Part shown: one piece after another, positions 4,189 to 42,200 of the stretch
Layout of the letters: every line of letters starts with the position of its first letter
Numbering within the stretch: the first letter of the stretch is position 1
From: Piromyces finnis finn
Lineage: Eukaryota > Fungi > Neocallimastigomycota
Direction: 5' to 3'
DNA: 64,000 bases
NCBI GenBank assembly: GCA_002104945.1
Contig: MCFH01000051.1
Coordinates: forward strand, 62,001-126,000
Position numbers and translations under genes: made by a program
Notes under the pieces: model-generated
The model's database searches: none
Told to the model about the DNA's origin: nothing
The model's input: the letters and a program-made list of their open reading frames with translations, nothing else

Positions 4189-10831
<6,643 letters not shown>

Positions 10832-11866
10832 TTTTTTTTTTTTTATTTTAAAAAAAGAAAAAATAAAAATTATCTTAATATTAAATATTTATTATTTAAA
10901 ATATTTTATAAATTCATAGTTATTTTAATATAATATATTAATACTATCAATAATTATTTTATATTTTTAAAGTAATTAATATTATAATATAATTGATAAT
11001 TATTTAAAGTAATCAATAATATATGTATATATTTTTATTTTTTTAAAATAATAAATAATTATATTTCATCAAACCTTTTTTTTTTTTTAAATAAAAATAT
11101 ATATATTTGAAGTATTTTTTTATATAATTTTTTTTTATTTATATATTAGTTTTTATTTTTAATATTTTTTATTTTAAATTTTGATATTTCTGAATAATTT
11201 TAAATCCAGGGTACTTTTTTTCAATTTCTTTTCTTTGAAAAGAGCATATTAAAATTTAATTTGATTAAATAAAATACAGTCTTTATTTTCTGAAGGGATG
11301 GTTAAATTATGGACCATACATAATTAATTTTTTAATATCAAAACTAAATGATTAATCAATAAAGGTAATATATTACAATATAGTTTAATATATTAATCAT
11401 TTTTAATTGACCAAGATTTTTAAATTATACTTAAAATTTTAATTAAACATTAATTATATGTAAATTTAGAATTAAAATTTTAAAATTTTAATATAAAATT
11501 TGGTTTTAAAAAAAAAATTAAATAGTTATATTTATTATTAATTTTTTTTTAATTCAGTTACTTTTTTTTTTTTTACTTTTTTAAAATATTTTTATAATAT
11601 TATTTCAATTACAGGAAAAAAGGTATAATTAACCTTATTATTCAATAAAGATAAAATACATATTATTAACAATAATATAATAACATAATTTTTTTTAATA
11701 TCTTTGGTTTATATAATGCTTTATTTTATATAATAAAATAACCGTAGTAGTCCTATATAATATTTATATATTTTGAAAAAAAAATATCTGAATAATTGTA
11801 ATTTTTTTATTATACACATCCAAATAATAACTAAACAAGTACTTTAAGCTTTCACAATATACTAAC

Positions 11867-13067
11867 ATGAGTGAGTCAAGAACTGAACTTATAGCTTGGT
11901 TGAATGATTTATTAAAATTAAATTATACCAAGGTTGAACAATGTGGAACAGGTAATAATTTAAACGAAAAGAGAAATAGAAACATATATATAATGAAAGC
12001 GAAAAGAGCATAATGATAACAGCAGCAACAATAATTCTTTAAAGCCAATTAAATATTAATAAAATACTAAAATTAAATTAATTACATATATATTTATAGG
12101 TGCAGCTCATTGTCAAATTATTGATTCAATTTATCGTAACTATTTTTTTTCTATTTATAAATAATATATAAATTGTAAATAAAAATAATAACAATAATAA
12201 ATTTTAATAAATCTATTAAAAAAAAAAAAAAAATTAAATAGCTGGTACTGTTCATTTATCAAAAGTTAAATTTAACGCAAATCAAGAATTTGAATATATT
12301 CAAAATTTTAAAATTTTACAAGCAGCTTTCCAAAAGAATTCAATTGATAAGGTAAATAAAATAAATGTCATATTCATTATGTTAATTTATTTATAAGTGC
12401 TATTATTAATATGTAAAATAAAATTATTCAAATTAAATAAATAAAAAAAAATAGATAAAAGGATTTTGAATATATTATTATATTATTATTTGACTAATTA
12501 GTTTTTTATTATATATTATATATAAAGACTATTCCAGTTGAGAGACTTGTTAAATGTAGATTTCAAGATAATTTAGAATTTTTACAGTGGATTAAAAGAT
12601 ATTGGGATACTTATTTCAGTGGTGAAGATTATGATGCTTTGTCTAGAAGAAATAATAATTCTCCAATGACCAGAAGAGGAAGTAATATTAAGCATTAAAG
12701 TTTTATGATATATATTAATAATATTTAGTAATAAGTTTATTTATATTCTGATGTTGTTATATAAAAAATAAATTACTATTATTAATTAAATAATTCTAAA
12801 CTATATATATACATTTCCCTTTTTATTAAAATATTATAACTTTTTATTCATAATGAATTATTTATATAAATAATAAACCATTGTAATAGCAAAGGATAGT
12901 ATTACTTCAAATATAAGAAAATCTTCAGTAAATAGTAATAAAAAAACTGTTGATAATAAGAAAAAAATGGTAGATTCATCATTAAGGTATATACATAGTA
13001 TAGAATATAAATTAAAATAAGATTACTATATATTGATTAGATTTTAAAGTTAATTAAAAAAATAAAT

Positions 13068-13114
<47 letters not shown>

Positions 13115-13786
13115 TATATAAAATGAATAATGTATTTAAATTTATTTTTTTCTTTAATTTTTTACATATAATTGGTTAATTTAGTAAACAAAATAGTAAG
13201 ATTGATGAATATGAAAAAGTTATTTTAGGATTAAATGAAGAAATTGATGAATTAAAGATGAATATAGATGGTTTAGAAAAAGAAAGAAACTTTTACTTTG
13301 GAAAACTTCGGGAAATTGAAATTCTAGTTCAAACACAAATTGAAGTAAAAATATATATATTCATTTATATACATTTATAATAAATAATAAAAAAATTTTT
13401 TATGCTCTAAATAGAAATATTAAGAAAAGAAACAATTAAAAAGCAAGTGTATTAAAAAACCTTTTATTATTATTATTTTTATATATATTTTATAACTATG
13501 TTATTATTATATGTAATTAGAGTGAACCAATAAATCCAGAACATTCATCAATATTAAAGGATATTCAAACTATTTTATATAGTACTGAGGTAAATTATTG
13601 TTATTGATTATAACAAAATAACAATATATTATATAAATAAAATACATTATATATTTATTAGTTTAATAAATATTATTATTTCTAAATTAACATTTTGATT
13701 TAAATTTAATTTTGTATTTTTTGTAGGAGGGATTTGAAATACCTGATAATGGGGAAACTGGAGAAAATGAAGAAGAAATGTTTTAA
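11867..13786 (+). CDS. BIM1: EB1/Bim1 microtubule plus-end tracking protein (RP/EB family), ~256 aa, 8 exons
   Basis: Exons 11867-11951, 12100-12135, 12242-12351, 12528-12681, 12890-12986, 13185-13344, 13521-13589, 13727-13786. CH domain [52 protein letters not shown]; EBH domain [30 protein letters not shown]; acidic-aromatic tail EEEMF. Missed by the ORF track because the exons are short. Confidence 0.95.
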
Positions 13787-14373: not shown

Positions 14374-17300
14374 TTAATTAAAAATAAAAAATAAAATTGT
14401 GAAAGTTAAAATAAATAATGTGTTTACTCTATACATATACTGTGATTGTATTGGGAGTGCTAAAGAAGTGCCATTATTTTCTTTATTATTCGGATCTTGA
14501 TTAGTATTGTCATCATTAGAATTTAAATTATTATCTGAAATACTAGATTGACAGTATAAAGAATATGTGTCATCATCTTTATTTATTGGTACTAGAGTAT
14601 ATAATGTTGAATTATAATTGTTTTCAGCAATAACTTTTATCAAAATCCTATTTCCTTGAGCTTCTGAAGAAATCGATGCGGTACCAAGATCCTTAATAGA
14701 AATATTATCTAATATATTATTAGTATCATATGAAGTTTTGGGGTTACAATATATAAAGATATATGAGTTATCACTATATTCTACTACTGGTTTTTTATTA
14801 ACATAGAACATTGAAACTGTAGATCGATCTGCATTATTATCACTAGAAATGTATTGAATAGTATAGGATACATATTCATTATTCGGTGCAAAGAAAGTAA
14901 TATATATTTCTTTATTCAAAATAAAATATGAAATATTGTAGATAGTGTATGGACTTTCTGTTTTAATTGAAATTGTTTTTTCAGTAATGTCATTTTTATC
15001 GTTAATCACAGCATAATATAGATAGCGATTTTCAATGATATCTAATTTATAATCATTTATAATAATATATTCAACTTTAAGATTATTGCTAGCAAATTCA
15101 ATAGAGATTTTAATGTCTGATGATGGCATAACAAATCGATAAGATTGATTAATACTAATACATTCAATCATTTTTTTATCTTTCAAATTAGTATAGATGA
15201 TTTCTCCTGTATTTTTATTCATGATTGTTATTTCTTTTACTCCATAACCTTCTGGTGGAGAAACTGAAAGATAAACTAATGTAGATTCTAGTGCGCTTTC
15301 TGGTACATTAACTTCAATATCAGTAACTTTTGATGAAGATATTATTGTATCACCATTTTCAAGGCTATATAAAAATTCTCTTTTATTATTTTTGGCTTTT
15401 TCAATTTTACTACTTTTAATAGTGGGTTTCATTTTTTTTGCTTTTTTCTTTTTTCCTGATTTTTTTGCTTTATCTAAATATTTACATCCACCATTTTTAA
15501 AAGTATAAACTTCATTTGTCTCTATATTATTACAATGATACTTAAACTTTGTATTCAAGTTAAAGTAACAATTATACTTATTATCAATAATAACTTTTTC
15601 TGTAGGTTGATTCATGGTATTAAGTTTATTTTGATAAATAATATCTAATGTTTTGCAAATATTATTTTCATTATTGTGATAAACTCCGTCACGATCAAAG
15701 TTGATAACATTAGAGAAATTATCAGTTATATTTAAATTATTATTATAAGCATTATCTTCTTTAAGTTTTGTATTACTTGTGTTCACTTCAGAATTTTCTT
15801 TTAATATATTCATATAAGTATTGAATTGAATGCTATATTTTTTTTGAGATACTTGATTGTTTAATTCAGATTTATAGGAAATTATCCATAGGTATTGAGA
15901 AGAACGAATTTTTGTGATGATACCATGAGAATAGAATTTAAGATTACAGCTACTTAAGTTTTTTGGATTTCCTTCATTATCTTTACTAATTAAATAACAT
16001 TTATAAGTATTGAAATTGTATTGTTTAAAATCGTTTGTCCATGGAATTAATATTTCTAATTGTGATGTTGCCTTAAGAGTAGTTCCAGTCATTGATTTAA
16101 TGGAAATATCTGTTAAATACTCTGTGTTAATTTCTGTATTATTGTAATTAATATCTTTTTTCATTAATATTTCACTTATATTATTATATATTTCCTTTTT
16201 AACTTGTCTTGATTGAATTATGATATCATTTTTATAAAATATATTATTATATTCATCATAAAACATTATATTATTATTAATACTGTCTGGAATAGAATAA
16301 GATAGTTTTGATGAAGGTGATTTACCATTATAAGAATATTGATAATATATAGTTCTTTGATGATCATAATCGTGTTCAGAAGAAATAATATAGCTAAAAC
16401 CAACAGGAGAAATATTATTTTCGTTTTTTAAGCCATTTATCTTAAAGTGATATACAATATTAGAAATACTTAAATCTGGGGTAAATATAAAATCAATACA
16501 ATTTGTTTTTTCATTAAATTTAATATTATTAATTGAAAAGTTTACATCCTTTTCTTCATCTTTAAGTATTGAATTAATTAAAGTATACTTTACTTCTATT
16601 GATATTTCTTTCTCCCTTTTTATTAATTGTTGATTATAACAGATGGATACACTGGTGGATTTTAAATTAATATAGTAATTCGGAAGAGGAGAGCTCTTTT
16701 TATAATCGATTGTGACACCATTTTGAGTTAAGGGTGGTGAAGCATCATAATATTTATATTTAGTTGTATATAAAATTTCAAATTTATCTTTATATGCTTT
16801 TAAGAAGTTTGTCCAATCTTTATGTTCTTTTGTGATTATTTTTCCATTTTCAATGACTTCTTCAATCCCTTCTTTACCAATTGAGAAATTTTCACCAAAA
16901 ATTTCATACCAATAAGATATAGGGACAGAAGTTATATAGAATTTAATGTATTGATTAGAAGCATATTTATTATTAATATTAATGAAGGAATGTCCAGGAA
17001 TGAACTGATAGGAGGTATAATTTCTAGTTATCGGTATATAGGTATATTCTTCAGAATTAAATATGTCATCAATTGATAAACTGTTCATTGTATTATTTTT
17101 ATTTTGATTTGTATAGCTATTAGTATTTGTGTAATTTTCTTTAGTTATATTAACATCTACCTCTGCATTTAGAGTCATATTAGTATAAAAGACAGGCATT
17201 TTTTCAGTTTCTTCATATACTCCAATTATATCTGATCTTTTTGAGATAATAAAACGATCGTTGTAATTTTCATAAAATATGTTATTTTTGTTCTTATTAT

Positions 17301-18993
17301 TAATACTACTAAACAAAAGTTCATCTTCAATAGGTTCGGAATCAACATTACCAAAATCTTCATATCTTTTATAAGAATCTACAATTTGCCCATTATAATA
17401 CATTTTCACATAACTAGTTTCTTGTATTTCTTTAACTAATAAATATGACATTGTATTTACATCAAACATTTCAGAAAACAAGTCATATGATAAAACTATG
17501 TTTTCAATTAAATCTTTATTATTTATTTTAAAATCAATTGATTTTACATTTATGTTAATAAATATTTTGTCTTTTTCTGAATTTATAATATCTCTTTTTT
17601 CAATAGTACTTTTTTCTCCTTTTTCATTGGCAATAGCATGAACTTTTAAATTTTTATATGAATTAGAAAATATCATTTCATTTAATACAGTAACATTATA
17701 ATTACTATATGAAGTTTTAACATCCATATAAAATTCATAATTTTGTTGAGTGAGTTTTGGAAATAAAAAATATGTATCTCTAGAAGCGAAAAGTGAACTA
17801 TCTTCTAATAAATAATTATTTGTAACTTCTGATCCAAACGCTGTGTATGGAATATAGTCATTTTTATTAACTTCATCATTTGTCATTGTTAATTCATTAT
17901 CATTTTCGTGGTTAACAAAATTATTTTGTCTTAGTTTTTCTATTGTCTTTGTATCCATTTTATATACTTTATAATAATTTAATGCCAAATCAATACTATA
18001 CCATTCATCATATATATTTATGACATTCCACATTTCGTTATTATTAATATTATTATTTTTTATATTGTCTGTGGTTTTCCCCCACACTAATATGCATTTG
18101 ATTCCAATATAATCCATAGCTAATTTAAATGTCTTTGCTAAATTAACAGATGTTGCAAATCCCGATTTAAATAGTCCATAAACCTCTTCTGCATTACGAT
18201 CTTTATATATAGTGTCCGTAATATTTTTTTTACCAAATGTCACATTATTACTGTCAAAAGATTCTACTTTACTGTAGATATTATTGATTACATTATTAAT
18301 AATTGTATTAATACCTTTACTAAAACTCGATACAGTCCAATAATAATCTTTATTGACAACTACTGGTACATCAACAAAAGTATTTTTAATAATCTCGTAA
18401 TATATAAATTTAATTTGCTCATTAATATAATCTTTTATTATATCTTTAGAATTTTTATTTTTTCTTGAATTATTTGTTAGACCTTTGTATAGATAGGAAT
18501 AGGTATTTTCATACATACCAGCATTTATTGTTTCATTGATATAAACCGTATTTTCAGGTGTTATAAATTCATTATGAACTAATATCAATTTTCCATTTTT
18601 ATGATATTCAATGTCTAAAGCATCCCAATCAATAAAACTTAATTCAGGGTAATCATAACGTGCAGCATATTTTGCGTTATTAAAATAATTTTTAAAATCA
18701 CTTAACTGTTTTTCAAAAATAAGATAGACATTTTGAGGGGTGCTATATTCGGTTGAATGACTATTTTTAAAAGATTGTATTAATGTTGTGGTGTTTAAAT
18801 GAACATATTCATTTTCTGAAATGATATTATCTAAATTATTTATAAGTAAATCATAAATATTTTTCTCCACATTATTTAACTGGTTATAATAATACTGATA
18901 ATTATTTTTATTTAAAAAGAAAGTAAAACTTGAGGTTTTTTTAAAACTTCCGAAAATGGAAAGTAAGTATATTAATATGTAGGTATATCGCAT
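14374..18993 (-). CDS. Large intronless secreted/cell-surface protein (1539 aa): signal peptide, transglutaminase-like (cysteine-proteinase fold) domain with apparently replaced catalytic residues, Ig-like/bacterial surface repeat modules, C-terminal hydrophobic (GPI-type) anchor signal
   Basis: Single 4.6-kb ORF. N-terminus MRYTYILIYLLSIFGSF. Motifs YYYNQL..EKNIYDLL, DYPELSFID, VYGLFKSGFATSVNLAKTFKLAMDYIGIKCILVWG, EMWNVINIYDEWYSID, VYLSVSPPEGYGVKEI..YRFVMPSSDIKISIEF, IKVIAENNYNSTLYTL. C-terminus NNGTS..LFILTFTILFFIFN. The ORF is certain; domain names are from motif recall. Confidence 0.8.
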   Translation of the reverse strand: MRYTYILIYLLSIFGSFKKTSSFTFFLNKNNYQYYYNQLNNVEKNIYDLLINNLDNIISENEYVHLNTTTLIQSFKNSHSTEYSTPQNVYLIFEKQLSDFKNYFNNAKYAARYDYPELSFIDWDALDIEYHKNGKLILVHNEFITPENTVYINETINAGMYENTYSYLYKGLTNNSRKNKNSKDIIKDYINEQIKFIYYEIIKNTFVDVPVVVNKDYYWTVSSFSKGINTIINNVINNIYSKVESFDSNNVTFGKKNITDTIYKDRNAEEVYGLFKSGFATSVNLAKTFKLAMDYIGIKCILVWGKTTDNIKNNNINNNEMWNVINIYDEWYSIDLALNYYKVYKMDTKTIEKLRQNNFVNHENDNELTMTNDEVNKNDYIPYTAFGSEVTNNYLLEDSSLFASRDTYFLFPKLTQQNYEFYMDVKTSYSNYNVTVLNEMIFSNSYKNLKVHAIANEKGEKSTIEKRDIINSEKDKIFININVKSIDFKINNKDLIENIVLSYDLFSEMFDVNTMSYLLVKEIQETSYVKMYYNGQIVDSYKRYEDFGNVDSEPIEDELLFSSINNKNKNNIFYENYNDRFIISKRSDIIGVYEETEKMPVFYTNMTLNAEVDVNITKENYTNTNSYTNQNKNNTMNSLSIDDIFNSEEYTYIPITRNYTSYQFIPGHSFININNKYASNQYIKFYITSVPISYWYEIFGENFSIGKEGIEEVIENGKIITKEHKDWTNFLKAYKDKFEILYTTKYKYYDASPPLTQNGVTIDYKKSSPLPNYYINLKSTSVSICYNQQLIKREKEISIEVKYTLINSILKDEEKDVNFSINNIKFNEKTNCIDFIFTPDLSISNIVYHFKINGLKNENNISPVGFSYIISSEHDYDHQRTIYYQYSYNGKSPSSKLSYSIPDSINNNIMFYDEYNNIFYKNDIIIQSRQVKKEIYNNISEILMKKDINYNNTEINTEYLTDISIKSMTGTTLKATSQLEILIPWTNDFKQYNFNTYKCYLISKDNEGNPKNLSSCNLKFYSHGIITKIRSSQYLWIISYKSELNNQVSQKKYSIQFNTYMNILKENSEVNTSNTKLKEDNAYNNNLNITDNFSNVINFDRDGVYHNNENNICKTLDIIYQNKLNTMNQPTEKVIIDNKYNCYFNLNTKFKYHCNNIETNEVYTFKNGGCKYLDKAKKSGKKKKAKKMKPTIKSSKIEKAKNNKREFLYSLENGDTIISSSKVTDIEVNVPESALESTLVYLSVSPPEGYGVKEITIMNKNTGEIIYTNLKDKKMIECISINQSYRFVMPSSDIKISIEFASNNLKVEYIIINDYKLDIIENRYLYYAVINDKNDITEKTISIKTESPYTIYNISYFILNKEIYITFFAPNNEYVSYTIQYISSDNNADRSTVSMFYVNKKPVVEYSDNSYIFIYCNPKTSYDTNNILDNISIKDLGTASISSEAQGNRILIKVIAENNYNSTLYTLVPINKDDDTYSLYCQSSISDNNLNSNDDNTNQDPNNKENNGTSLALPIQSQYMYRVNTLFILTFTILFFIFN

Positions 18994-20002: not shown

Positions 20003-21252
20003 TTACTTTCTGAAAATAATTTTTTGTAAAATAGTTTTAACTGATGGACCCTTAATATTAGCTTGAATAATCTTTGGAATTTGCTTAGAGTTAGCAATTG
20101 CTCTACCTAAAACTGGACCAGAAATCTTTCTTACACCGAATCTTGGAGCCTTGAATACAGAATCACTTTTTAATTGTTTAGCTAATGCCTTTCCTTGTTC
20201 GCTACCGAGTTTGGTTTTGTTAACAACACTTACACGTAAATATTCTAATGGGGTGGTAAGGAAAATACTAGTCATACTAGCAGCTATACTTCCAATACCT
20301 GGAACATAAAATGGAATTGGTCTTTCTGGATGATTATTCTTGTTGTATTTAATAATAGCTCTTTGGTATAAGTCATCACAAGCAAAGAAAGTAACTAAAA
20401 ATGGCATATTACTGTAATAATGAAATTTTTATATAATTTAATTAACCATTAAATATAATTGTATATGTAATCTAAAAGAAAAAGGAAAAGCTCGCATTTA
20501 CTTACGCAAAGTAACTGTTCCAGTATCCTTTCCATAATTTGAATAATCCTTCTTTCTTAACAAAGTTGACACCAGATTTGAAGAAATTCATTTGCTTTTG
20601 ATTATTAAGTAAACGATATTGATGAATTCTTGAATATGGGAGCCAAATAGTATTTTCTAAAAGAACACCAAGAGAACCAGCACCATAAGCTAATTCAATT
20701 GGATTAATATTTGGAAAATGATTACGAGCTGGAACTTTCATAATTTCATAACTAGCTAATACAAAACCAGTAACTGGACAATTAAAGAAAACATTATTGA
20801 AAAAATCTTTTCCAACACCACTGATGTGAATATATTTTTTTAAATGTAATGGATTGTTCTTTGGAGCATCATATAAGTGAGGTTTGTATCTTTTTTCAAT
20901 TGGGTAATAAACAGTTTCTATTTTAATTTAATATACATATTTTTTTTAAATTATGAAAAATTAATGTTTTTAATTTAATTAAAGTATATAAATATAAAAA
21001 TAGGTATAATTTTATAAGTTAGATTGGTAAAATATTATTGAATATAAAATTATTTTTTTTACAAGAATAAAAAAAAATTTTAGAATATTTATATTATTTA
21101 TATTTTTTACCTGCACAAACACCCGAGAGTGTACCAATTAAAAATGAAGTAAAAATGTTACTTGGAACAATCTTATATTTCTTTTCATTTTTTGGTTTTT
21201 CAACTTCCTTTGGAGTTTCAATTTTTTGTGGTCTTAATGTTTTTCCTGACAT
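20003..21252 (-). CDS. Divergent mitochondrial/hydrogenosomal carrier family (SLC25) protein, ~320 aa, 3 exons
   Basis: Exons 21252-21111, 20917-20506, 20411-20003 join in frame. Three-repeat layout: GTLSGVCAETVYYPIEKRYK / GAGSLGVLLENTIWLPYSRIHQYR / GSIAASMTSIFLTTPLEYLRV, with KKEGLFKLWKG and FVLASYEIMK. Confidence 0.8.
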
Positions 21253-24913: not shown

Positions 24914-28284
<3,371 letters not shown>

Positions 28285-39232: not shown

Positions 39233-42200
39233 CTAATATTCATCAATAATATTAGATAAAATTTGTGATTTTTTTATTATTAATCTGGCTTGAGATTGTC
39301 TAATAGCTTGTTGCTTTTCACGTTGATAAAGATTACGATCTGATAAACTCCTGTTTTCAACATCTGATGAAAATGAATCATTTTTCACTGTTTCTGGAAT
39401 AAATTCATGACTGTCCTTAAAATTTTTAGGTAAATCATAATTCTAATAAATCATTTTTTATAAATTTAGTATATATTAGTTAATTGCTTTTCTAATTTAT
39501 AATGTGTAATTATTCTATTTACCCAATAATTATCATTAACAAGTTCAAAAAATTCTTTAAATAAATAATTATCTTCCAAGGTTTTAATAGAACCTACAAC
39601 AATTAACTTTCTTTTTGCTCTTGTAAAAGTAACATTAATTCTTCTCCAATCCTTCAAAAGCATACCAATCTAATATTAAAAAAAATAATTTTGAAATATA
39701 TACATTAGATTATTTTCAATACCACTATTAAAACAACTTTTTTCTGGAATAAAGAAGATATTGAAGAATATTTAAAATTTTAACAATGATTAAATTATTA
39801 ATCTTACATTTCCTTTTTTATTAGATCTTACTAAAGATACAATAATACAATCTTTATCTTTTCCTTGGAATTTATCAACAGTGTGAATTTCCAATTCTTT
39901 TAACGATTTTAATTCTTTTTTAAAATGAGTGTGTAATTGTTTTACTTGTGCACGATATGGTGAAATTATACCAATAGAAGAGTTAGGTATACCACAAGTC
40001 TTCAAAGATTTTACAATTTGTAAAATAATTTCAGATTCTGTTTCATTATAAATTAAATTTGAATTACTATCTTCTGTAGTATCCAATTTATCAGTATTCA
40101 AGAAGATTACAGAATTACTATTTCATTAATAATATATAATTTATAAAACAATATAAATATATATAATAAATATTATTAGTAATTTAAACAACAGAAATAA
40201 TAAATAATCTACTATATAAATACATATAAAATACTCACTTTGGATTAAGAACATGTTTAATCCAACAATGATCATTACCGAGACATCTAGAACCTGAATT
40301 AACTTGAGATGAAAAACGATGAATTTCATCTAATTTTCCCGGTTCTGGAATTTCTAATAACAGATGGCGAGCTTCTTCTGTACCACACCTTAGTTTATAA
40401 TTGTAAATCAATTGATTAGAAATTTTCATAATCTCTTTGTTCATACGGTATTGGAATTTCAAATATGAAACAGCTTCAGGGTGAGCCTCAGATAAATGCT
40501 TAAAAAGACTTGATAAATCACTATTTCTTGCTTCAGATGATCTCATCTATTTGATTTAATATTGATATTTAAAGATATTAACAAACAATATATATAATAA
40601 AATATTTGTTTTATAATTGTAATATTCATAATAAAATTAATATCTTACCAAAGGTGGTAATTGATAATGATCACCAACTAAAACAAAAGTTTTGGCATAT
40701 TTTAATGGACCTATTGTAATTGGGAGAGTAATTTGTGAAGCCTCATCAACAATACAATAATCAAAATGAAATTTTTTAAATATGGCACTATTAATATAAA
40801 AAAGATAAAAATATAAATTATTAAAATATATATTTACTATTTAATTTAATATAAAAGAAAATTAAATAAATATAACAATTCCTACTTTGCTGAACCAAGA
40901 CATGTAGTGGCAAATATATTTTTTGATTTATAGAAAGTTTCTAATTTTTTTACTGTATCTATACTTTCATCAATAACTTTTTTATCTCTATGAATTGATG
41001 GATGGATCTGTTTATCAGTTTATATAAATTAGAAAAAAAAAAAAAGATTAATAATTCTTTTTTTCATTATTTATTAAATATTGAATTTTCATTTACATTT
41101 CGCAATTACCTTATCAATATTTCCTACTCTGAAAAAATCAATATTTTTTTCTTGAAGCTTTAATAAAATATTATCAACGGCAGTATTGGTATATGAAGTA
41201 ATTAAAACTTTCTTATTATTCTTTATTAAAATTTCAATTAACGCTGTTATGGTTGTAGTTTTTCCTGTTCCAGGCATACCAAGTATTAAACTATAATCGA
41301 TAGCTAAATTAAAAATTAAATGTAATAGAAAAAAAATAAATAAAATTATATTTATAATTATATCAATTTATTAAATGAGGAGTATATTATATTACTACAA
41401 TATATCTAATATATATAATATAATATTAGATTAATTACCAGATAAAGCTTTTTCGACAGCATTCTTTTGATAAGGATCCAACCTTTCAGCAATATTTTTG
41501 GGTATAGTCATTTCTTTTTTGTTAAATTTAGGGATTTCTAAATCAACAATAAGTTTTCTTAAATTATTATTATCCTGTGATCTAAATAAATCCAATAAAT
41601 TATTTCTTGTAATATTAATACCAGAACTCATTTCATCTTTATCAATTCGATATAATAACTTTTTCATTATTTTCTCACGAGAATCATCTTCTGTGATTTG
41701 ACTATTATGACGCTTTAAATTATTATCAGATAAAGACAACATTGGATATCTTTGAGAACACGAGTTTTGTGATGAAAAGAGGTTGTTAAAATAATCAGTT
41801 TTCTTATGCTTAGTGTCTTCCAAAAGTGTAAGATATTTGAAATTTTGATTTGAATCTTTATTAAAATCTTTCTCTTTAATAGGAATTCCTAATAAAGGTT
41901 TTCCTATACTTACTGCAACATAATTACTATTTAATTCAGTAATAAAACCAATACCAATTGCAAAATGATCTTCTTCACTAGAAATAACCACTGGATCACC
42001 AATATTTAACTGATAATTAAGTAAAGATTCTCCTTCTTCCGACTTATCTCTTTCAAAATAATATTTATAACATTCTTCTTTAATTATCTTCATATTAGAA
42101 AAGCATCTTTTAAATATTATAACCAAATTTATTTATATGATATATAATAAAATGCGTGTCAATAAATAATAATAATAATAATAACTATATTAAGTATATT

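Follow-up and report, generated by a model that had tools for sequence, protein, structure and literature searches.

An old horizontal acquisition from gut Clostridia as the likely source of a predicted surface-anchored, non-catalytic transglutaminase-fold protein in anaerobic gut fungi

Introduction

Clostridia carry a family of long extracellular proteins with a transglutaminase (TG)-like unit (e.g. P0018, P0012, P0158, P0160; loci L010-L089), which is partly cellulosome-associated and otherwise uncharacterised. Related to it are the dockerin-bearing 'transglutaminase-like' proteins of Ruminococcus flavefaciens FD-1, cellulosome components that are induced on cellulose (PMC2930009), and PDB 9crn, a TG-only relative for which our literature search found no publication. 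Here we describe a gene of the gut fungus Piromyces finnis, found in a 64,000-nucleotide stretch of contig MCFH01000051.1 (GenBank assembly GCA_002104945.1, positions 62,001 to 126,000; hereafter the window), whose protein, named 'Transglutaminase-like domain-containing protein' in UniRef, can be compared with this family in architecture. Both have a signal peptide, a YYYxQL helix, a D(Y/H)PE.F.iD motif and a papain-like core, then two beta-sandwich domains in the same order; a Flg_new_2-type module after these is clear in 21 clostridial sequences and only putative in the fungus, and the C-terminal anchor of the bacterial proteins has a predicted counterpart in the fungal one. They differ in that identity is about 20% and the fungal proteins are without the catalytic Cys and His, add long inserts of low complexity, a module rich in Cys and further beta-sandwich modules, and end in a signal of glycosylphosphatidylinositol (GPI) type rather than in a transmembrane (TM) helix with a basic tail or a dockerin (no dockerin was matched).

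In overall topology the fungal protein also resembles the GPI adhesins of fungi (Als, Epa and Flo type), which consist of a signal peptide, an N-terminal globular ligand domain, a low-complexity stalk and a C-terminal GPI signal. There is no sequence relationship with these adhesins, and anchoring of the present protein is a prediction. Whereas their stalks are Ser/Thr-rich tandem repeats, the stalk here would be built of Ig (immunoglobulin)-like, Flg_new_2-like and Cadherin-like beta-sandwiches, and the N-terminal domain is a seemingly dead transglutaminase fold of bacterial descent.

Most genes that gut fungi gained by horizontal gene transfer (HGT) originated in Clostridiales, and such genes contain fewer introns (10.1101/487215). 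The present gene shares with that catalogue of Clostridiales-to-Neocallimastigomycota transfers (Murphy et al., 10.1101/487215) the donor group, few or no introns and occurrence in several genera; it differs in being predicted non-enzymatic, extremely diverged and compositionally ameliorated, whereas the catalogued genes are mostly metabolic enzymes or carbohydrate-active enzymes (CAZymes) whose bacterial affinity is clear and whose guanine-cytosine content (GC) is a little raised. The word 'transglutaminase' does not occur in the accessible parts of the text and supplement of that catalogue, nor in those of the supplements of PMC11291939, and our literature search found neither the locus tags of the gene nor a mention of it in the HGT surveys covered. 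Taken as a whole, our observations are best explained, and we think probably correctly, by an ancient acquisition from Clostridia whose product is now a GPI-anchored, non-enzymatic surface binding protein.

Results

Two collinear regions relate the fungal protein to a clostridial family

Searched with a HMMER profile of the N-terminal unit, 1.84 billion representative proteins gave only the fungal family below 1e-30, followed by 171 Transglut_core-type matches starting at ~1e-10, many of the best non-fungal ones being long proteins or fragments of long proteins. Measured against named Clostridia proteins, all 154 non-fungal matches compared were clearly nearer than the fungal ones. The contigs of three sampled relatives carry SpoIIE, TilS or CotJA/B/C, which points to spore-forming Clostridia. 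When each prokaryotic species was represented by one genome, a scan recovered at least 568 loci of the family; the 80 that were listed all fall in Clostridia and close allies, many of them metagenome-assembled genomes (MAGs) from herbivore guts, and include Lachnospiraceae, Oscillospiraceae, Ruminococcus, Ruminiclostridium, Monoglobus/Monoglobaceae, Christensenellaceae, Roseburia and Eubacterium among others. The nearest relatives outside the gut fungi are thus extracellular proteins of gut Clostridia, 900-1,400 amino acids (aa) long, and not vertically inherited proteins of non-rumen fungi. These bacterial members begin with a signal peptide and end either in a TM helix with a Lys/Arg-rich (KKK) tail or in a Dockerin_1 domain. 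Individual members carry further domains, namely Cohesin (P0041), Dockerin_1 (P0160, P0164), three Big_2 (P0100) and leucine-rich repeats (P0164).

Profile-profile comparison matched aa 30-425 of the fungal protein to the bacterial family (hhalign 98.7%, E 1.9e-16) and, collinear with it, aa ~776-1031 (hhalign 95%, E 4e-8; E 0.0017 with a smaller alignment). Hidden Markov models (HMMs) built from bacterial sequences only recovered all seven fungal proteins, both for the TG unit (aa 27-435; E 1e-19 to 1e-24) and for the middle region (aa ~764-1041; E 1e-12 to 5e-5), while reversed fungal sequences reached at most 2.7 bits against the same models. At the level of profiles, then, aa 27-435 and ~764-1041 share homology with the clostridial family, in collinear order. 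The linker, the block at aa 655-763 and the C-terminal 260 aa gave no significant match to the bacterial family profiles with either HMMs or hhalign, and scans of the whole protein against Pfam, NCBIfam and PDB sequences returned only a sub-threshold Ig-like match.

A single-copy chromosomal gene shared by gut fungi

The gene is one uninterrupted open reading frame (ORF) of 1,539 codons plus stop, running from ATG to TAA with zero internal stops, and its translation is 100% identical to BCR36DRAFT_415451. Both a protein search and N- and C-terminal profiles found a single copy in P. finnis (assembly 56.46 Mb, 232 contigs), which supplies the paralogue count suggested by a first-pass annotation of this DNA. 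Full-length orthologues with 50-63% identity, collinear and conserved end to end, were found only in Neocallimastigomycota, namely in Piromyces sp. E2, Anaeromyces robustus, Pecoramyces (fragment P0008 and full-length P0157) and four metagenome lineages, and all of them are single open frames. The Piromyces sp. E2 model (P0003) is without aa ~527-680 (columns ~590-775 of alignment A1), where gene prediction has probably called an intron wrongly across the low-complexity linker.

The bacterial-type architecture and the uninterrupted ORF are what one would also see in a bacterial contaminant or a mis-assembly. We ruled this out, and regard it as effectively refuted, by composition, synteny and distribution. 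Gene GC is 0.231 in a window of ~18% GC, and its third-position value (GC3, 0.155) matches that of adjacent coding ORFs (0.13-0.19). Intron-bearing eukaryotic genes lie on both sides, with convergent EB1/BIM1 exons 3' of the gene and mitochondrial-carrier exons 5' of it; the same order, Mito_carr - gene - EB1, recurs in a second genus with the A. robustus orthologue, and EB1 also lies downstream of the orthologue on metagenome contig L004. Four sequenced genomes of gut fungi, moreover, contain the gene. It genuinely belongs to the fungal chromosome as a conserved gene in single copy, and its composition is fully ameliorated.

The gene was probably acquired from Clostridia before the sampled genera diverged

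From 599 columns of the TG and middle regions we built a tree of 68 sequences by a quick search under a site-heterogeneous model. The fungal proteins formed a monophyletic clade with support 100, the only non-bacterial branch of the tree, on a stem of 5.66 substitutions/site. This clade attached beside four clostridial MAG sequences (L075/L050/L054/L069, support value 98). Because of the length of the stem and the skewed composition no donor can be named, and we rejected a donor assignment from the tree as unreliable. The direction of transfer would be from bacteria to fungi, since hundreds of diverse bacterial loci (those listed span several clostridial families) stand against one fungal copy in one phylum.

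Clostridial nearest relatives, collinear homology in two regions and fungal monophyly together support the horizontal origin that the first-pass annotation had proposed, as an old acquisition by Neocallimastigomycota from a family of gut-Clostridia surface proteins. The transfer is supported as ancient, its recipient being an ancestor shared by Piromyces, Anaeromyces and Pecoramyces at the least. The gene also has the marks by which horizontally acquired genes are recognised: it is integrated in a chromosome, it is confined to one phylum among eukaryotes (in libraries without taxon labels), its nearest relatives are bacterial and its ORF is uninterrupted.

We also considered that no such transfer had occurred, and that the gene is an ancient vertical eukaryotic or fungal gene lost elsewhere, passed from fungi to bacteria, or merely resembles other members of the transglutaminase superfamily. 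The very low identity to bacterial proteins, the fully host-like composition and a search library without taxon labels would suit this explanation. Against it, a second, family-specific region beyond the superfamily core is homologous in the same order; the architecture occurs in at least 568 bacterial loci, with several clostridial families among the 80 listed, and in fungi as one copy in one phylum; and three large searches returned no other eukaryote. In the two of our word-indexed searches that return source names, no eukaryote besides gut fungi appeared. We judge an origin without bacterial-to-fungal transfer to be very improbable. A word search with a mixed profile, whose words came mainly from fungal rows, gave almost only the fungal family and adds little on bacteria or other eukaryotes.

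The transglutaminase-like unit is predicted to be inactive

The TG unit consists of an N-terminal helical part (YYYNQL..EKNIY, DYPELSFIDWD) and a papain-like core. In a direct Pfam scan for Transglut_core (PF01841) the window protein had no match and the Pecoramyces fragment scored 18.3 bits against a cut-off of 23; the protein is placed in the transglutaminase superfamily by its profile-profile match to clostridial proteins that pass PF01841. The Cys-His-Asp triad is kept in 95 of 108 long-family sequences, all non-fungal members of which are bacterial-type. At these positions all seven fungal proteins instead carry Ser, replaced by Pro in Anaeromyces, then Glu and Asp. We therefore predict that the TG unit is inactive, given S282, E320 and D335 at the triad positions.

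Six clostridial members (P0018, P0163, P0101, P0151, P0067, P0085) are likewise without the catalytic Cys, which is replaced by Pro, Ala, Ser or Gly in independent losses, and keep the Asp and His (Arg in P0151). P0018 reads 'GYATPAGY' at this point, reminiscent of 'GYATPMNL' in Anaeromyces.

Could the protein, with the same origin and location, still be an enzyme, in which Ser-Glu-Asp forms a working variant, for example in a Ser-nucleophile hydrolase whose targets would be polymers of the wall or the substrate? Asp335 and Glu320 do not vary, six of seven orthologues have Ser in place of the Cys, and the TG unit is the best-conserved large domain of the protein (60% identity among orthologues). 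Conservation of the nucleophile position nevertheless breaks down in Anaeromyces, which has Pro there, and several bacterial lineages lost the Cys while keeping the fold, which speaks for variants of this kind being non-catalytic. No Ser-Glu-Asp enzyme with a transglutaminase fold is known, and we consider retained catalysis quite unlikely.

Beta-sandwich modules follow the transglutaminase-like unit

The first domain of the middle region (aa ~760-876) is an Ig-like/E-set domain and holds the FIFTPDLS...YHFKINGL segment. An AlphaFold (AF2) model of aa 655-1045 from a mixed alignment of 49 rows had a mean predicted local distance difference test (pLDDT) of 70, with blocks at 80-95; a model of aa 655-1475 from six fungal sequences alone was discarded (pLDDT 41.5). 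When folds were compared by VIA, the first domain aligned with the N-domain of 3bc9 (Z 8.9, root-mean-square deviation 3.3, 94 aligned residues), with CopC-like 9c14 (Z 8.2) and with bacterial adhesin and S-layer domains (Z 5.7-6.5), SbsC and Sap (Z 5.8-5.9) standing among many generic Ig-like folds. Foldseek against PDB gave generic tandem-Ig matches only (E>1e-3). The segment FIFTPDLSISNIVYHFKINGLKNE (aa 835-858, nucleotides (nt) ~16420-16491), in which the first-pass annotation had seen an SbsA/Big_5-like domain, does lie at that place and in an Ig-like/E-set beta-sandwich, but the fold is generically Ig-like and gives no specific support to SbsA or Big_5. Since the homology extends beyond the TG core to a second, separate region in matching order, and that region has an Ig-like fold, the expectation of bacterial-type domains is supported.

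Between the TG unit and the middle region, the N/K-rich linker holds one conserved island (aa ~478-526), and the block at aa 655-763 was modelled with AF2 pLDDT ~70-83 over aa ~681-748 and compared with the bacterial family at hhalign P 0.06.

For the C-terminal part we built module profiles from genuine clostridial domains. The Flg_new_2 profile, made from 12 clostridial PF18998 domains, aligned with aa 1226-1303 (hhalign, 64 columns, P 4e-4), covering the 'P.eGY' and 'F.MP..dv.v.a.F' signatures, and scored 7.8 bits in HMMER for the window protein against at most -1.4 bits for controls. In 21 long-family sequences of Clostridia the profile matched just behind the middle region (E down to 7e-8), so that the module order agrees with that proposed for the fungal protein. 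The Cadherin-like profile gave P 9e-4 for aa 1428-1472, the C-terminal half of the domain only, and P 0.07 for the other module; in HMMER, Cadherin-like was the top match at the same place in six of seven proteins (3.3-9.7 bits; reversed controls at most 1.9 bits). As a lead only, the clusters that came nearest to aa 1215-1475 in the ESM Atlas are bacterial and carry domains of Flg_new_2 and Cadherin-like type (180 features shared, at a score of 0.90). Pfam gave one match on the Flg_new_2-like region, a sub-threshold HYDIN/VesB Ig-like domain (E 3e-4).

These profiles lend independent, weak support to two segments singled out in the first reading, the InlB-B/Flg_new module 'PPEGY...YRFVMPSSDIKISIEF' (aa ~1239-1300, nt ~15094-15279) and the cadherin-like segments ending '...IKVIAENNYNSTLYTL' (at aa 1467, nt ~14593), both found where they had been placed. 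Both fall below Pfam cut-offs, and the cadherin-like resemblance lies mainly in the last strands; the Flg_new_2-like and Cadherin-like assignments are plausible from the profiles but unproven. The Cys-rich module sits between two low-complexity/basic linkers, and a counterpart was not detected in the bacterial family.

The protein ends point to secretion and, probably, a GPI anchor

We judged the signal peptide and the GPI signal by eye from the alignment. A signal-peptide-like N-terminus, as claimed at first reading, is present in all seven orthologues. At the C-terminus, the putative GPI-type signal comprises a candidate omega site at the invariant S1510, a spacer of ~14 aa and a hydrophobic tail, T1525-F1538, that ends the protein; all seven fungal orthologues have a hydrophobic stretch of 14-17 aa at the very end with no charged tail after it.

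Public gene models read this end otherwise. In the P. finnis model P0001 (1,524 aa) the hydrophobic tail is lost to a small intron at the very 3' end, and in that of A. robustus, P0007, a 3' intron likewise lies just before the tail (14374-14440 (-) in the window; L006:8960-9355). In both, the last 15-17 codons of the open frame are replaced by two codons, and the models are otherwise identical to the open frame. If this intron is real, the protein, with the same horizontal origin, would be secreted and soluble, with the medium or the substrate as its place of action; both models end two codons after a donor-like GTAAAC/GT just before the tail. Three observations argue against it. The tail stays in frame and hydrophobic, with a stop directly after, in seven of seven lineages, despite intron-like DNA in the window being ~13% GC and stop-codon-rich; a terminal exon of two codons is typical of a prediction artefact; and the spacing of the invariant small-residue patch at S1510 suits an omega site. 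We think a soluble product unlikely, and favour the uninterrupted reading because the tail remains in frame up to the stop in all seven lineages.

Two statements of the first-pass annotation need qualification here. It had called the gene intronless, which holds for the open frame but not for the public models, and it had described a GPI-like tail in place of LPXTG or SLH anchors; the pattern recurs by inspection in all seven orthologues, but the public models splice it off and the bacterial relatives use a TM anchor or a dockerin rather than LPXTG or SLH.

Features of the gene and its surroundings

The coordinates are collected in Table 1. The neighbouring genes are exon-split (EB1, carrier, RasGEF, DEAH helicase, Dna2), in line with the earlier remark that other genes here carry introns, as judged from ORF pieces. 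RasGEF, the DEAH-box helicase and Dna2 are ordinary multi-exon eukaryotic genes, the first split over two ORF pieces and the second lying in overlapping frames. The second-longest ATG-initiated open frame of the window, of 480 aa, is without a Pfam match.

Table 1 Features of the gene and neighbouring genes in the window
Feature	Residues (aa)	Position in window (nt)	Strand	Basis or remark
Complete uninterrupted coding sequence	1-1539	14374..18993	-	1,539 aa + stop, BCR36DRAFT_415451
Signal peptide, putative, MRYTYILIYLLSIFGSFKKTSS/FTFF boundary (predicted cleavage after MRYTYILIYLLSIFGSFKKTSS)	1-22	18928..18993	-	Inspection; hydrophobic core kept in 7/7 orthologues
Transglutaminase-like unit	27-435	17689..18915	-	hhalign 98.7%, E 1.9e-16 vs clostridial family
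Triad positions	S282; E320; D335	18148-18150; 18034-18036; 17989-17991	-	Alignment of 108 members
N/K-rich linker, poorly conserved	436-654	17032..17688	-	44% mean identity; no bacterial match
Conserved block, beta-rich	655-763	16705..17031	-	68% mean identity among orthologues; no significant bacterial match
Middle region, two beta-sandwich domains	764-1041	15871..16704	-	hhalign 95%, E 4e-8; HMMER 7/7
Cys-rich small module	1105-1172	15478..15681	-	Four invariant Cys: C1113, C1142, C1154, C1170
Flg_new_2-like (divergent InlB B-repeat-like) beta module, putative	1226-1303	15085..15318	-	Weak support
Two more beta-sandwich modules, Cadherin-like-like, putative	1304-1472	14578..15084	-	Weak; mainly last strands aa 1428-1472
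N/D/S-rich stalk and GPI-type signal, putative	1473-1509; 1510-1539	14377..14577	-	By inspection
RasGEF gene		7528-10831	+	Two ORF pieces
EB1/BIM1 exons		11831-13377	+	PF03271 E 8e-12 at 13180-13377
Mitochondrial-carrier exons		20006-20927	-	Weak Pfam match at 20505-20927
DEAH-box helicase exons		26725-28018	+	Helicase_C, HA2
Dna2 exon		41431-42126	-	
ATG-initiated ORF	480 aa	44224-45666	-	No Pfam match

Discussion

We propose that, after its transfer, the clostridial gene would have been ameliorated in composition, lost its catalytic Cys and His, received inserted linkers and gained extra modules, and that its prokaryotic anchor would have been exchanged for a GPI-type signal. The signal peptide would direct the protein to the secretory pathway and the C-terminal signal to a GPI anchor, from which it may perhaps then be cross-linked to the wall, and the dead papain/transglutaminase-fold domain would be held away from the cell on a stalk of beta-sandwiches and low-complexity sequence. 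There it would act as a binding protein (adhesin or receptor) and not as an enzyme, with the former substrate cleft as the likely ligand site. A non-catalytic, surface-displayed binding role is, we infer, the most likely one. Our best guess at the ligand, something associated with plant fibre or a microbial surface, follows from the dockerin or cohesin domains of some bacterial relatives.

More specifically, the protein may be a phylum-wide attachment device, a bacterial cellulosome or surface TG-fold protein captured before the genera diverged that now serves as a GPI-anchored pseudoenzyme whose dead cleft binds a ligand on plant fibre or on partner microbes (methanogens, bacteria). We offer this narrower proposal only tentatively, and lean towards doubt.

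Several points weigh against our interpretation of origin and role. Identity to the bacterial proteins is only ~20% over aligned columns, and the long stem together with skewed composition means that the placement of the fungal clade within the bacterial tree may be a long-branch artefact. The statement that no other eukaryote has the gene rests on similarity patterns and on word searches that return names, the big library being without taxon names. Among the homologues matched there was no Neocallimastix protein, though the N. californiae proteome is public; in that species the gene may be absent, unannotated or mis-modelled. Pfam did not call PF18998 or PF12733 in the six members scanned (E<=5), and both terminal signals were read by eye. 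Should the public models be right, the protein is secreted and not anchored, and the gene is not strictly intronless. Lastly, our literature search gave no expression, localisation or binding data for the gene.

Beyond the first-pass annotation, which had proposed a candidate HGT-derived adhesin, the present analysis adds three points: the triad residues predict a catalytically dead TG unit, the transfer is an ancient one, and its donor is not resolvable. Transfer from rumen Clostridia to gut fungi is well documented for enzymes and hardly for surface proteins. The crown group of gut fungi is dated roughly to the Cretaceous-Paleogene boundary. If our interpretation holds, a whole multidomain bacterial surface architecture has been kept for tens of millions of years while its catalytic site was disabled and its anchor exchanged for a eukaryotic GPI-type signal. 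Public models clip the putative anchor signal, so that secretome and GPI-ome surveys built on them would miss the gene. It offers a concrete, single-copy candidate for the poorly understood attachment of gut fungi to fibre or to syntrophic partners, and a handle on an uncharacterised and very widespread clostridial protein family.

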